Sequence record: KY555145.1 | Direction: 5' to 3' (one strand) | Length of the DNA: 64,000 nt | Part shown: piece by piece, positions 52,980 through 56,875 of the stretch | Numbering within the stretch: position 1 is the stretch's first letter | How the letters are laid out: each line of letters begins with the position of its first letter | The notes under the pieces: generated by a model | Database searches by the model: none | Seen by the model: only the letters and a program-made list of their open reading frames with translations | What the model was told of the DNA's origin: nothing | Program-made: the position numbers and the translations under genes

Positions 52980-53053
52980 GCGGGTATAGCTCAAAGGGAG
53001 AGCTACTGCCTTCCAAGCAGAAGATGCGGGTTCGAGCCCCGCTATCCGCTCCA
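52980..53053 (+). tRNA. tRNA-Gly(TCC)
   Basis: Loop CT-TCC-AA, CCA end. Confidence 0.9.
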
Positions 53054-53074
53054 AATTTTTCTTCCACGACAAGC

Positions 53075-53103
53075 TTGACAGCCGTCGAGTTTTGTGAGAG
53101 CCT
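53075..53103 (+). promoter_or_regulatory. sigma70-type promoter, tRNA operon 1
   Basis: AAATTTTT UP tract, TTGACA, TTGTGAGAGCCT. Confidence 0.65.
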
Positions 53104-53112
53104 TCAACCACT

Positions 53113-53175
53113 ATGACGCACCTCCTGACCCGTTACGAACGCGAGGCCACCGGCCTCGATACCACCACCGCCTAA
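53113..53175 (+). CDS. leader peptide 1 (20 aa)
   Basis: MTHLLTRYEREATGLDTTTA overlapping the terminator hairpin. Confidence 0.6.
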   Translation: MTHLLTRYEREATGLDTTTA

Positions 53176-53202
53176 AAGCGGTTCTGGTAACCGAGGCCTT
53201 TT
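53152..53202 (+). terminator. attenuator terminator 1
   Basis: GGCCTCG/CGAGGCC outer stem, ACCA/TGGT and ACCGC/GCGGT inner stems, TTTT. Confidence 0.6.
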
Positions 53203-53209
53203 GTCATGT

Positions 53210-53287
53210 GGCCCGGTCGTCTAGCGGTTTGCAGGATTCGTGACTTTCAATCACGAGAGCGGAGTTCGAGTCTCCGTCGGGCCTCCA
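53210..53287 (+). tRNA. tRNA-Glu(TTC)
   Basis: Loop CT-TTC-AA, CCA end. Confidence 0.9.
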
Positions 53288-53308: not shown

Positions 53309-53383
53309 GGTGCGTTCGTATATCGGTCAATACTCCGGATTGTCGATCCGGCAAGAGGGGTTCGATTCCCCTACGCACCGCCA
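53309..53383 (+). tRNA. tRNA-Asp(GTC)
   Basis: Loop TT-GTC-GA, CCA end. Confidence 0.9.
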
Positions 53384-53848: not shown

Positions 53849-53868
53849 AGATTTTTCTCACGACATGC

Positions 53869-53897
53869 TTGACATCCGTCTGAAGTTGTGAGAGCCT
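53869..53897 (+). promoter_or_regulatory. sigma70-type promoter, tRNA operon 2
   Basis: TTGACA ... TTGTGAGAGCCT, same design as 53075. Confidence 0.65.
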
Positions 53898-53991
53898 GTC
53901 CAACGTCACGGGTCACGACACTCCTCGTAGTGCAAAAGCGCGATCCTTCGTTATTCCCAGGCCGCCAGCGGGCGGCCGTTCGAGAGTCATC

Positions 53992-54138
53992 ATGTTCGCC
54001 TTGTCGCATAACAGCCTGAGCCTGAAAGCCGCCTCTCCGGCGACGCTTTCGCTTGCGCTGTCTCCGACGGCCGCGACGGCCGCGACGCCCTCGACCAAGC
54101 CGACCCACTCGGCCTCGCACTCGACGGATCACCTCTAG
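53992..54138 (+). CDS. leader peptide 2 (48 aa)
   Basis: MFALSHNSLSLKAASPATLSLALSPTAATAATPSTKPTHSASHSTDHL. Confidence 0.65.
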   Translation: MFALSHNSLSLKAASPATLSLALSPTAATAATPSTKPTHSASHSTDHL

Positions 54139-54203
54139 GGTATCTCGTCTCAGGTGCAGGCCTTGGAGCCGCACCCGCTACCAACATCCTGTTGACCTAG
54201 CGC

Positions 54204-54240
54204 AAGGCGGCTCCCAGCAAGGAGACCGCCTTTTCTTTTT
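54204..54240 (+). terminator. attenuator terminator 2
   Basis: AAGGCGGCTCC/GGAGACCGCCTT then TTCTTTTT. Confidence 0.8.
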
Positions 54241-54415: not shown

Positions 54416-54488
54416 GCTGCTGCGCCTGGATCGGCGCCGGCCCCTTGGTATGGGGAAGTAGAAGGTTCAATTCCTTCCAGCAGCACCA
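54416..54488 (+). tRNA. atypical tRNA-Thr(GGT)
   Basis: Perfect 7-bp acceptor G1-C72/C2-G71, loop TT-GGT-AT, aberrant D-arm. Confidence 0.6.
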
Positions 54489-55401: not shown

Positions 55402-55488
55402 GGTAGGTGGTTCCGGCCTGGGGCCGGACCCGGTTGCTAACCGGCCGGAGCCGCAAGGCTTGGGGTTCGATTCCTCCTCCTACCGCCA
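55402..55488 (+). tRNA. tRNA-Ser(GCT)
   Basis: Class II cloverleaf. Confidence 0.85.
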
Positions 55489-55764: not shown

Positions 55765-55793
55765 TTGACACTGCGAAACTGTTCTGCTAGGGT
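55765..55793 (+). promoter_or_regulatory. sigma70-type promoter, tRNA operon 3
   Basis: AAATTTTTT, TTGACA, GCTAGGGT. Confidence 0.7.
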
Positions 55794-55800
55794 TCACGTC

Positions 55801-55899
55801 ATGAGCAAGACCTATCGTCAATTTGTGCGCCAGATTCAGGTCGTCCGGAATATCCGGGCGGGCCGCTCGCGCATGGCTGACGAAGGGTTCCGGGACTAG
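55801..55899 (+). CDS. leader peptide 3 (32 aa)
   Basis: MSKTYRQFVRQIQVVRNIRAGRSRMADEGFRD, nearly leaderless ATG. Confidence 0.7.
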   Translation: MSKTYRQFVRQIQVVRNIRAGRSRMADEGFRD

Positions 55900-55928
55900 G
55901 TCCCACTCCACGTTCAACCAGTTTCGCG

Positions 55929-55960
55929 AAGGCCCGCCTGGACACCCAGGCGGGCCTTTT
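55929..55960 (+). terminator. attenuator terminator 3
   Basis: AAGGCCCGCCTGG/CCAGGCGGGCCTT then TT. Confidence 0.85.
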
Positions 55961-56766: not shown

Positions 56767-56792
56767 ACACGCCGGCCGAGGCCGGCACAAGC

Positions 56793-56875
56793 GCCCTGGT
56801 AACCGAGGGGGACTACGAATCCCTTAGTCGTAGCAGGAGTTGAAAAGGGTGGTTCGAATCCACTCCAGGGTGCCA
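56793..56875 (+). tRNA. atypical tRNA-Arg(ACG)-like, D-arm-less
   Basis: 7-bp acceptor, GGGGA/TCCCT with loop CT-ACG-AA, canonical T-loop, CCA end. Confidence 0.5.

Follow-up and report, generated by a model that had tools for sequence, protein, structure and literature searches.

Phage transfer RNA (tRNA) genes are usually treated as constitutive cargo, and the question raised by the locus described here is whether a translating ribosome could set the supply of two of them. The locus, Leader 1, lies within the 156-nucleotide (nt) spacer from tRNA-Gly (UCC; 52980-53053) to tRNA-Glu (UUC; 53210-53287), a spacer that opens a 25-tRNA region of Caulobacter phage Ccr29 (KY555145.1). The window analysed is a stretch of 64,000 nt from that record, and window numbering is the record's numbering. 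Ccr29 is a phiCbK-like phage; over the window its identity is 100% to Ccr10 and Ccr2 and 96-98% to phiCbK-like Shapirovirus phages. The spacer carries no annotation in the Ccr29 record; the phiCbK, Karma and Swift records label its hairpin as a "predicted rho-independent terminator" (TransTermHP). Leader 1 is a real and deeply conserved element. With a confidence that falls just short of even, we read it as a translation-coupled RNA switch, in all likelihood a ribosome-dependent transcription attenuator, that gates the phage tRNA-Glu and tRNA-Asp genes. Four other readings rank below this one, in descending order a tRNA-folding switch, an untranslated structural element, a stand-alone small gene and a nascent-peptide arrest sensor, and each is weighed below where the evidence bears on it.

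Anatomy of the Leader 1 region

The features on which the argument depends are listed here by window position.

53055-53061, + strand: A/T-rich UP-like element ATTTTTC, 5′ of the −35 (recurrent pattern ATTTTTY-N8-14-TTGACA)
53075-53080, + strand: −35 hexamer TTGACA of the leader promoter, kept in orthologues at a near-fixed distance from the ATG
53098-53103, + strand: putative weak −10, GAGCCT
53113-53175, + strand: leader open reading frame (ORF) MTHLLTRYEREATGLDTTTA, 20 codons, from ATG at 53113 to TAA at 53173-53175
53137-53145, + strand: Glu codons GAA (53137-53139) and GAG (53143-53145) with CGC between them; GAG overlaps segment 1
53142-53148, + strand: segment 1, CGAGGCC, identical in sequence to segment 3; pairs with segment 2
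53152-53158, + strand: segment 2, GGCCTCG, partner of either segment 1 or segment 3
53152-53198, + strand: 2:3 hairpin, 17 base pairs (bp), interrupted, −28.5 kcal/mol, with TAA (53173-53175) in its apical loop
53158-53160, + strand: Asp codon GAT, invariant in all lineages
53192-53198, + strand: segment 3, CGAGGCC, the 3′ base of the 2:3 hairpin
53199-53202, + strand: U-tract TTTT, followed by GTCATGT, between hairpin and tRNA
53210-53287, + strand: tRNA-Glu (UUC), first gene behind the switch (ARAGORN; Rfam, 47.8 bits)
53309-53383, + strand: tRNA-Asp (GUC), second gene behind the switch (ARAGORN; Rfam, 57.5 bits)

The 2:3 hairpin is the minimum-free-energy (MFE) fold of the spacer and consists of three stems (GGCCTCG/CGAGGCC, TACCA/TGGTA and ACCGC/GCGGT) closed by the loop CTAAAA, with tRNA-Glu beginning 11 nt after the stem. 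The spacer folds at −50.5 kcal/mol, compared with −35.0 ± 3.5 for 200 shuffles (z = −4.38; none of the 200 as good). When the RNA is folded only up to the stop codon, a 7-bp 1:2 hairpin, CGAGGCC-ACC-GGCCTCG, is obtained. The strands of both helices had been picked out in an earlier note made from the letters alone, and its GAGGCC (53143-53148), GGCCTC(G) (53152-53158) and CGAGGCC (53192-53198) followed by TTTT (53199-53202) are all present, the first extending to CGAGGCC at 53142-53148. The note had also placed the stop codon in the loop of a terminator-like hairpin, which is where the TAA of CTAAAA lies, in a structure longer than the one it described. A further pairing in the Ccr29 fold, between the start codon and the GTCAT that follows the U-tract, is not conserved and was dropped.

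A simple terminator scan, whose rules for loop and stem leave no room for interrupted stems, did not list the 2:3 hairpin, and an E. coli-type promoter scan of the Leader 1 region returned nothing, with no E. coli-type −10; as these misses stem from the rules of the scans, they were discounted as counter-evidence. A search of 53054-53209 with Rfam 15, T-box and riboswitch models included, gave no match at E ≤ 1 and recovered flanking tRNAs only, and neither ARAGORN nor the Rfam tRNA model called a tRNA cloverleaf or remnant in the spacer. The copy number of Leader 1 was checked within the 64-kb window. The position of the hairpin is not that of a plain operon-end rho-independent terminator: it stands about 90 nt after a conserved promoter and 11 nt before two conserved tRNA genes.

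Conservation, covariation and the reading frame

In the Dolichocephalovirinae, about 10 lineages have the Leader 1 module directly 5′ of tRNA-Glu and tRNA-Asp; it comprises a promoter, an ORF of 20-21 codons, a hairpin with the stop codon in its loop and a competing segment 1. The sequences compared with Ccr29 came from Poindextervirus (CcrBL10, CcrRogue), BL57, Colossusvirus (CcrPW, CcrColossus), three groups of Brevundimonas phages (Kabachok and Marchewka; Bajun; Kikimora), Bertelyvirus (RB23, BL47, CcrBL9), an IMG/VR jumbo phage (L080, UViG_3300001199) and a metagenome contig (L112, MG_L112). Two patterns were searched in IMG/VR: the first, a 15-mer, gave 64 loci whose true matches were known isolates only, and the second gave one new jumbo phage; the metagenome pattern search gave one true match among the matches listed. 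The orthologous hairpins are of 16-21 bp and −27 to −34 kcal/mol and end 4-11 nt before tRNA-Glu, and the 1:2 and 2:3 helices share segment 2 in every lineage. The 5′ neighbours of the module differ (tRNA-Gly, skipping-rope RNA or protein genes). On its 3′ side tRNA-Glu follows in every lineage, and tRNA-Asp follows tRNA-Glu in the lineages checked, which do not include UViG_3300001199; the CcrRogue copy of tRNA-Asp is annotated as a pseudo-tRNA.

The tRNA-Glu-like gene of UViG_3300001199 (L080:5121-5200) has a UUC anticodon loop and an aberrant-looking T-arm, and ARAGORN makes no call on it.

Both helices carry covariation. The 2:3 statistics come from a covariance-model alignment (15 sequences) that had been fitted to the structure and so leans towards it: 83% of cells are paired, compared with 27-43% with slid partners, and double-sided changes occupy 13 cells, compared with 4.8 in shuffles (0 of 500 as high). 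For the 1:2 helix, 70% of cells are paired, compared with 23-42% with slid partners, and its score was reached by 16 of 500 shuffles. Compensatory changes in the 1:2 helix occur in Bajun (GACCC/GGGTC, in which the segment 2 change gives a synonymous Gly codon) and in Bertelyvirus (CGGCTC/GAGCCG, with the register shifted by one). An alignment-free comparison of matched and permuted duplex energies over 8 lineages gave p = 0.003 for 1:2 and p = 0.0006 for 2:3, with negative controls at 0.36 and 0.91, and RNAalifold on a plain MAFFT alignment, not fitted to structure, predicted the 1:2 and apical stems. The alternative pairing of 1:2 and 2:3 that the earlier note had drawn is therefore borne out as two exclusive helices, conserved with covariation in about 10 lineages.

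The reading frame is conserved in a different manner. Fourteen sequences representing about 10 lineages all retain the ATG, the frame and an in-frame TAA or TAG, at a length of 20 or 21 codons; the stop is always TAA or TAG and always within the apical loop. The sole indel is of 3 nt, and the poorly conserved 5′ 24 nt of the ORF contain none. The G+C content at third codon positions (GC3) is 0.70-0.84, above that at first (GC1) and second (GC2) positions. The leader peptide is free to vary except for M1, one GAG and D-T near its end, and, Glu, Asp and Thr apart, non-synonymous changes are frequent even among close relatives; this substitution pattern looks like that expected of a leader peptide, not of a functional protein.

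These features bear on whether the frame is used at all. It is unlikely, in our view, that Leader 1 is an untranslated structural element, such as a leaky terminator, a ribonuclease (RNase) site or a precursor stabiliser, of which the ORF and its codons are by-products. Stems do take up most of its conserved codons, with E-A belonging to segment 1 and G-R/L-D-T to segment 2 and the middle stem; an open frame of 20 codons is not unusual at 62% G+C, and the phiCbK annotation gives a terminator only. Interrupted hairpins of 17-21 bp flanked on the 3′ side by A/U-rich sequence are also similar in form to the sites of RNase III and RNase E. Against this, the ATG at the predicted start of the transcript does not vary, whereas the −10, the flanks and the following codons do, the loop keeps only an in-frame TAA or TAG, the variable 5′ part of the ORF has no indels and the one indel elsewhere spares the frame at 3 nt, and GAT is invariant even though its pairing context differs by lineage. 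Nor would the conserved competitor, segment 1, have a role in a plain terminator or processing site.

The codons GAA (53137), GAG (53143) and GAT (53158), to which the earlier note had drawn attention, are in the ORF as described. The E-R/S-E motif that contains the two Glu codons is present in all lineages but Bertelyvirus, which has a single GAG, and GAG is present everywhere. The Asp codon GAT is the minor one, with 103 GAT to 511 GAC in the long ORFs of the window. The six Thr codons noted earlier, including the run of three ACC (read here at 53161-53169), are also present, and Thr is enriched in the Ccr29 ORF (6 of 19, P = 0.001). However, the suggestion that they provide a second input did not hold: the ACC run is confined to Shapirovirus and Poindextervirus and forms the 5′ arm of a stem, and only Thr-2 (Ile in Marchewka) and the Thr that follows Asp are conserved, so Thr was rejected as a conserved second input. 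As the earlier note observed, no Thr tRNA follows Leader 1 directly; ARAGORN places tRNA-Thr (GGT) in the next block, at 54416-54488.

That the sole invariant residues lie near the C-terminus (G-R/L-D-T-x-A/T-A/S-stop), just before a stop codon in the loop, could also point to nascent-peptide arrest, in which the C-terminal residues would stall the ribosome at the stop codon within the hairpin loop, perhaps in response to a ligand, and hold the terminator open, in the way of TnaC-type leaders with Rho. We consider this improbable, since the residues coincide with conserved stems and RNA constraints therefore explain them; they also show no similarity to known arrest peptides.

Promoter, read-through and the fate of the hairpin

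The pattern ATTTTTY-N8-14-TTGACA that heads Leader 1 occurs five times in the window (28156, 53055, 53851, 55747 and 57308), always on the + strand, compared with none expected from 100 shuffles, and its copies stand ahead of all three tRNA leaders of the window, Leaders 1, 2 and 3. The sole other copy of the 30-nt motif CTTGACA-N12-TGTGAGAGCCT is at 53868, ahead of Leader 2. Among the orthologues, 12 of 14 have TTGAC(A/G) 29-33 nt 5′ of the ATG, the exceptions being MG_L112 (CTGACA at 29 nt) and CcrBL9 (a poor match, GTGTCA at 36 nt). With a 17-nt spacer and a 6-nt −10, the predicted transcription start is the A of the ATG or lies 2-3 nt before it. As the ATG follows the −35 by 29-33 nt and no Shine-Dalgarno sequence precedes it in any lineage compared, the leader mRNA is probably leaderless or has a 5′ untranslated region (UTR) of at most 3 nt. 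No promoter was found between the hairpin and tRNA-Glu/Asp, and the conserved tRNAs therefore depend on read-through.

A promoter followed by about 90 nt and a hairpin with a U-tract is also the shape of a small-RNA gene, and Leader 1 could be a stand-alone gene for a trans-acting RNA of about 90 nt or a micropeptide, with the tRNAs transcribed by incidental read-through. Precedents exist in alphaproteobacteria: the attenuator RNA rnTrpL and the leader peptide peTrpL of Sinorhizobium are reported to act in trans (PMC6614838, PMC7298713). Still, the unit always lies 4-11 nt 5′ of tRNA-Glu/Asp whatever its upstream neighbours, the peptide is poorly conserved, with many non-synonymous changes in close relatives, and the tRNAs lack a promoter of their own. 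A separate gene, which we place next in rank after the untranslated element and hold to be likewise unlikely, would in any case be compatible with attenuation and does not exclude it.

For attenuation, which we favour, the following course of events is proposed. A host-type promoter (A/T-rich element and TTGACA) would set the 5′ end of the RNA at the AUG or at most about 3 nt from it, and a ribosome would translate the 20-codon ORF through segments 1 and 2 and stop within the 2:3 loop. If no ribosome were present, or if it lagged before codon 9, the 2:3 hairpin would form with UUUU 11 nt 5′ of tRNA-Glu, and transcription would terminate to release a leader RNA of about 90 nt. A ribosome anywhere from GAG to the stop codon would cover segment 2 and the 5′ arm, so that no hairpin would form and the polymerase would read through into the tRNAs. 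Slow decoding at GAG (Glu) or at GAT (Asp, a minor codon read by wobble) would then yield more tRNA-Glu/Asp, and segment 1, by competing with segment 3 for segment 2, would set the basal level.

The geometry can be followed codon by codon. Counted from the first nucleotide in the P site, a ribosome encloses the mRNA to about +13 to +15. When its A site is occupied by GAG (53143), segment 1 and the first bases of segment 2 would be covered; from GAT (53158) onwards to the stop codon, the cover would extend over segment 2 and the 5′ arm. A polymerase coupled tightly to a ribosome at the stop codon would have reached about 53199-53202. Translation that keeps pace, or that stalls at GAG or GAT, would therefore result in read-through, because the base of the hairpin by the U-tract cannot form. 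The earlier note's proposal that a ribosome stalled at Glu or Asp codons masks the 5′ arm of the terminator is thus retained for GAG 53143 and GAT 53158, and set aside for GAA 53137, where a ribosome of the usual footprint would cover segment 1 only and the 2:3 hairpin would therefore be favoured. In E. coli, ribosomes repress intrinsic terminators located at or just after the stop codon (PMC4824070).

Several observations weigh against attenuation. If 2:3 is the terminator, the direction of the response to a GAA stall should be wrong for a demand sensor. The Glu and Asp codons form no run and are not enriched, at 3 of 19 compared with 12.5% in the background (P = 0.43), the background being the long, high-GC3 ORFs of the window (E 5.9%, D 6.7%, T 6.9%); the description of Leader 1 as a "codon-matched leader" was rejected on this ground, though the positions of the codons are conserved. 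Some of the 1:2 signal is to be expected at little cost, because the GGCC core shared by segments 1-3 is self-complementary. Judged against the E. coli consensus the −10 element is poor, and leaderless initiation would be weakened in the four lineages whose predicted start precedes the AUG by 2-3 nt. The U-tract, with 2-5 U in the first 8 nt among the relatives, is good in Ccr29/phiCbK (UUUU), Bajun and L112, and is reduced to 2-3 U in 8 nt in Bertelyvirus, CcrRogue, UViG_3300001199 and MG_L112; the last of these has a UUUU run, the first U of which is placed in the stem by the fold. The 2:3 hairpin may therefore not terminate everywhere, and the earlier note's designation of it as a terminator suits the UUUU of Ccr29 better than the family, in which the U-tract is strong only in some lineages. 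In a search of sequencing runs with 601 nt, the region was spanned by a single Logan contig from a phiCbK RNA-seq study, which possibly represents DNA. One ribosome profiling (Ribo-seq) and two RNA-seq raw runs contained no phage reads and are uninformative for or against, and the supplement of the phiCbK RNA-seq paper gave nothing for gp079-gp084. Counted in favour of attenuation is that one promoter class heads Leaders 1-3 and that Leaders 2 and 3 are enriched in matching codons.

The 3′ base of the hairpin has a further potential partner in the first tRNA.

53190-53217, + strand: possible 3:4 pairing of ACCGAGGCC (53190-53198) with GGCCCGGT (53210-53217, nt 1-8 of tRNA-Glu)

From the complementarity, the 5′ strand of tRNA-Glu is a possible fourth segment. 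The 3:4 duplex was evaluated with the last 24 nt before the tRNA (hairpin 3′ base and tail) as the test segment, and in Ccr29 amounts to −14.7 kcal/mol, compared with −8.5 ± 2.7 for shuffles. Complementarity to the first 8-10 nt of tRNA-Glu was found in all nine lineages tested, across six types of acceptor stem, with energies of −12.5 to −15.6 kcal/mol, compared with −8 to −11 for shuffles (mean z = −2.3), whereas the same leader segment reaches only −5 to −11 kcal/mol with the 5′ strand of tRNA-Asp. The matched arrangement ranked 13th of 720 permutations, with no derangement better, and the permutation test over 8 lineages gave p = 0.011. Leaders 2 and 3 show no complementarity to their first tRNA. 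When segment 2 is masked, segment 3 is paired with the tRNA in the MFE folds of Ccr29, PW, Kabachok and Bajun, its partner in Ccr29 being the 3′ end of the tRNA.

On this evidence Leader 1 might control tRNA folding or processing, with segment 2 and the 5′ acceptor strand of tRNA-Glu (segment 4) as the two alternative partners of segment 3; we hold this to be a possibility, and a modest one. In the OFF state, 1:2 and 3:4 would form, the acceptor strand would be sequestered and the precursor would not be matured. In the ON state, a stall at a Glu codon would free segment 2, the 2:3 helix would lock segment 3 and tRNA-Glu would fold, 2:3 then being no terminator. The position of a ribosome on the leaderless mini-ORF might thus tune the supply of tRNA-Glu co-transcriptionally, with or without termination, a proposal to which we attach the same restrained confidence. 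Such a switch would account for a 3:4 complementarity that persists despite differing acceptor stems and for a short tRNA spacing of 4-11 nt that is conserved where the U-tract is not, and under it the first Glu codon has the correct logic. However, the statistical support is moderate (p of about 0.01-0.02), and G+C-rich strands pair easily; the cloverleaf is still favoured in the folds of BL57, Kikimora and BL9, and the tertiary stability of real tRNAs lies outside the model of the fold program. The hairpins of Ccr29, Bajun and L112, with their good U-tracts, would terminate, and the logic is wrong for the invariant GAT. The complementarity is, moreover, equivalent to mimicry of the tRNA-Glu acceptor stem by the base of the 2:3 hairpin, and may serve another purpose.

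Known attenuators, Leaders 2 and 3 and neighbouring tRNA-like genes

As a candidate attenuator, Leader 1 resembles trpL, hisL, thrL, pheL and pheM, which serve amino-acid operons and pheST, in its promoter-proximal short ORF laid over exclusive helices, in the G+C-rich hairpin and U-tract ahead of the regulated genes and in a poorly conserved peptide with the relevant codons on or beside segment 1 (the Trp codons in trpL). It differs in that tRNA genes, not biosynthetic or synthetase genes, would be regulated, in having one or two Glu codons and one Asp codon with no run, and in its probably leaderless mRNA. It also has three clear segments, not four, because the stop codon is within the terminator loop; the possible fourth is the tRNA itself. 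Coupling attenuators of the pyrBI type are similar in that the ORF enters the terminator hairpin, a close ribosome blocks it and read-through tracks coupling, but Leader 1 has no evident nucleotide-sensitive pause region and does have a competing segment 1 and downstream tRNAs. T-box riboswitches likewise sense tRNA status and choose between terminator and antiterminator within the same amino-acid system; in contrast to Leader 1, they bind tRNA directly, without translation, and control synthetase and amino-acid genes in Gram-positives, and none was matched by Rfam in Leader 1. The trpL attenuator of Sinorhizobium (rnTrpL/peTrpL) is an alphaproteobacterial, ribosome-dependent attenuator whose released RNA and peptide can be functional in their own right, but belongs to a host amino-acid operon and has no sequence similarity to Leader 1.

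The closest likenesses are in Ccr29 itself. Leaders 2 (53869-54240) and 3 (55765-55960) have the promoter class of Leader 1 and, behind it, a short ORF, a U-tract hairpin and a tRNA block, but their terminators are canonical and follow the stop codon, whereas the stop codon of Leader 1 is within the hairpin loop. In the Leader 2 ORF (53992-54138), 40 of 47 residues are cognate to its own tRNAs (P = 2e-9), and in the Leader 3 ORF (55801-55899) 17 of 31 are (P = 5e-4), with 13 of 18 in its first part. In Leader 3, 30 nt separate the −35 from the ATG, a leaderless-like arrangement comparable to that of Leader 1; the 5′ UTR of Leader 2 is about 90 nt.

Full-text literature searches found no leader-peptide or attenuator control of phage or bacterial tRNA genes, and the phiCbK genome paper describes tRNAs and TransTermHP terminators only, the terms "leader" and "attenuat" being absent from it; we thus found no published description, in the literature searched, of a ribosome-operated switch of the Leader 1 type before tRNA genes. 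If the proposed attenuation is correct, the phage gauges decoding capacity and tunes the supply of its own tRNAs. This would be relevant to codon-usage adaptation and to the evasion of host defences in which tRNAs are cleaved or depleted, and would extend classical attenuation to tRNA genes and leaderless mRNAs. The match between hairpin and tRNA-Glu acceptor, if functional, would amount to control of tRNA maturation by competing folds, of which no description was found in the same literature. phiCbK and Caulobacter provide a tractable model in which these proposals can be tested.

Several minor observations concern the surroundings of the leaders. The Leader 1 promoter of Poindextervirus phages and BL57 is separated from tRNA-Gly by extra sequence, about 290 nt long in the former and about 110 nt in the latter. 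In CcrBL10 the first part of it matches the skipping-rope RNA (RF02924; L003:381-477) at 48.6 bits, compared with a gathering threshold of 36.7. The extra sequence is also present in CcrRogue (L004) and, in shorter form, in BL57 (L005), the Rfam scan of it having covered CcrBL10 only; Ccr29 has no such sequence between tRNA-Gly and the promoter. Behind Leader 3, which has a Tyr codon and lies just 5′ of it, the segment 56002-56086 is tRNA-like by eye, with an acceptor stem GGATGCT/AGCATCC followed by A and CCA, a GTA anticodon loop (Tyr), a long variable arm, a T-arm with GGTTCGATCC and an odd D-arm; it is called by neither ARAGORN nor Rfam nor the GenBank record. Two further unannotated segments, 55402-55484 and 56792-56872, match only the Rfam tRNA-Sec model, at 44.0 and 25.1 bits (gathering threshold 47), and the former may be a tRNA-Ser, given its anticodon-loop GCT and long extra arm.

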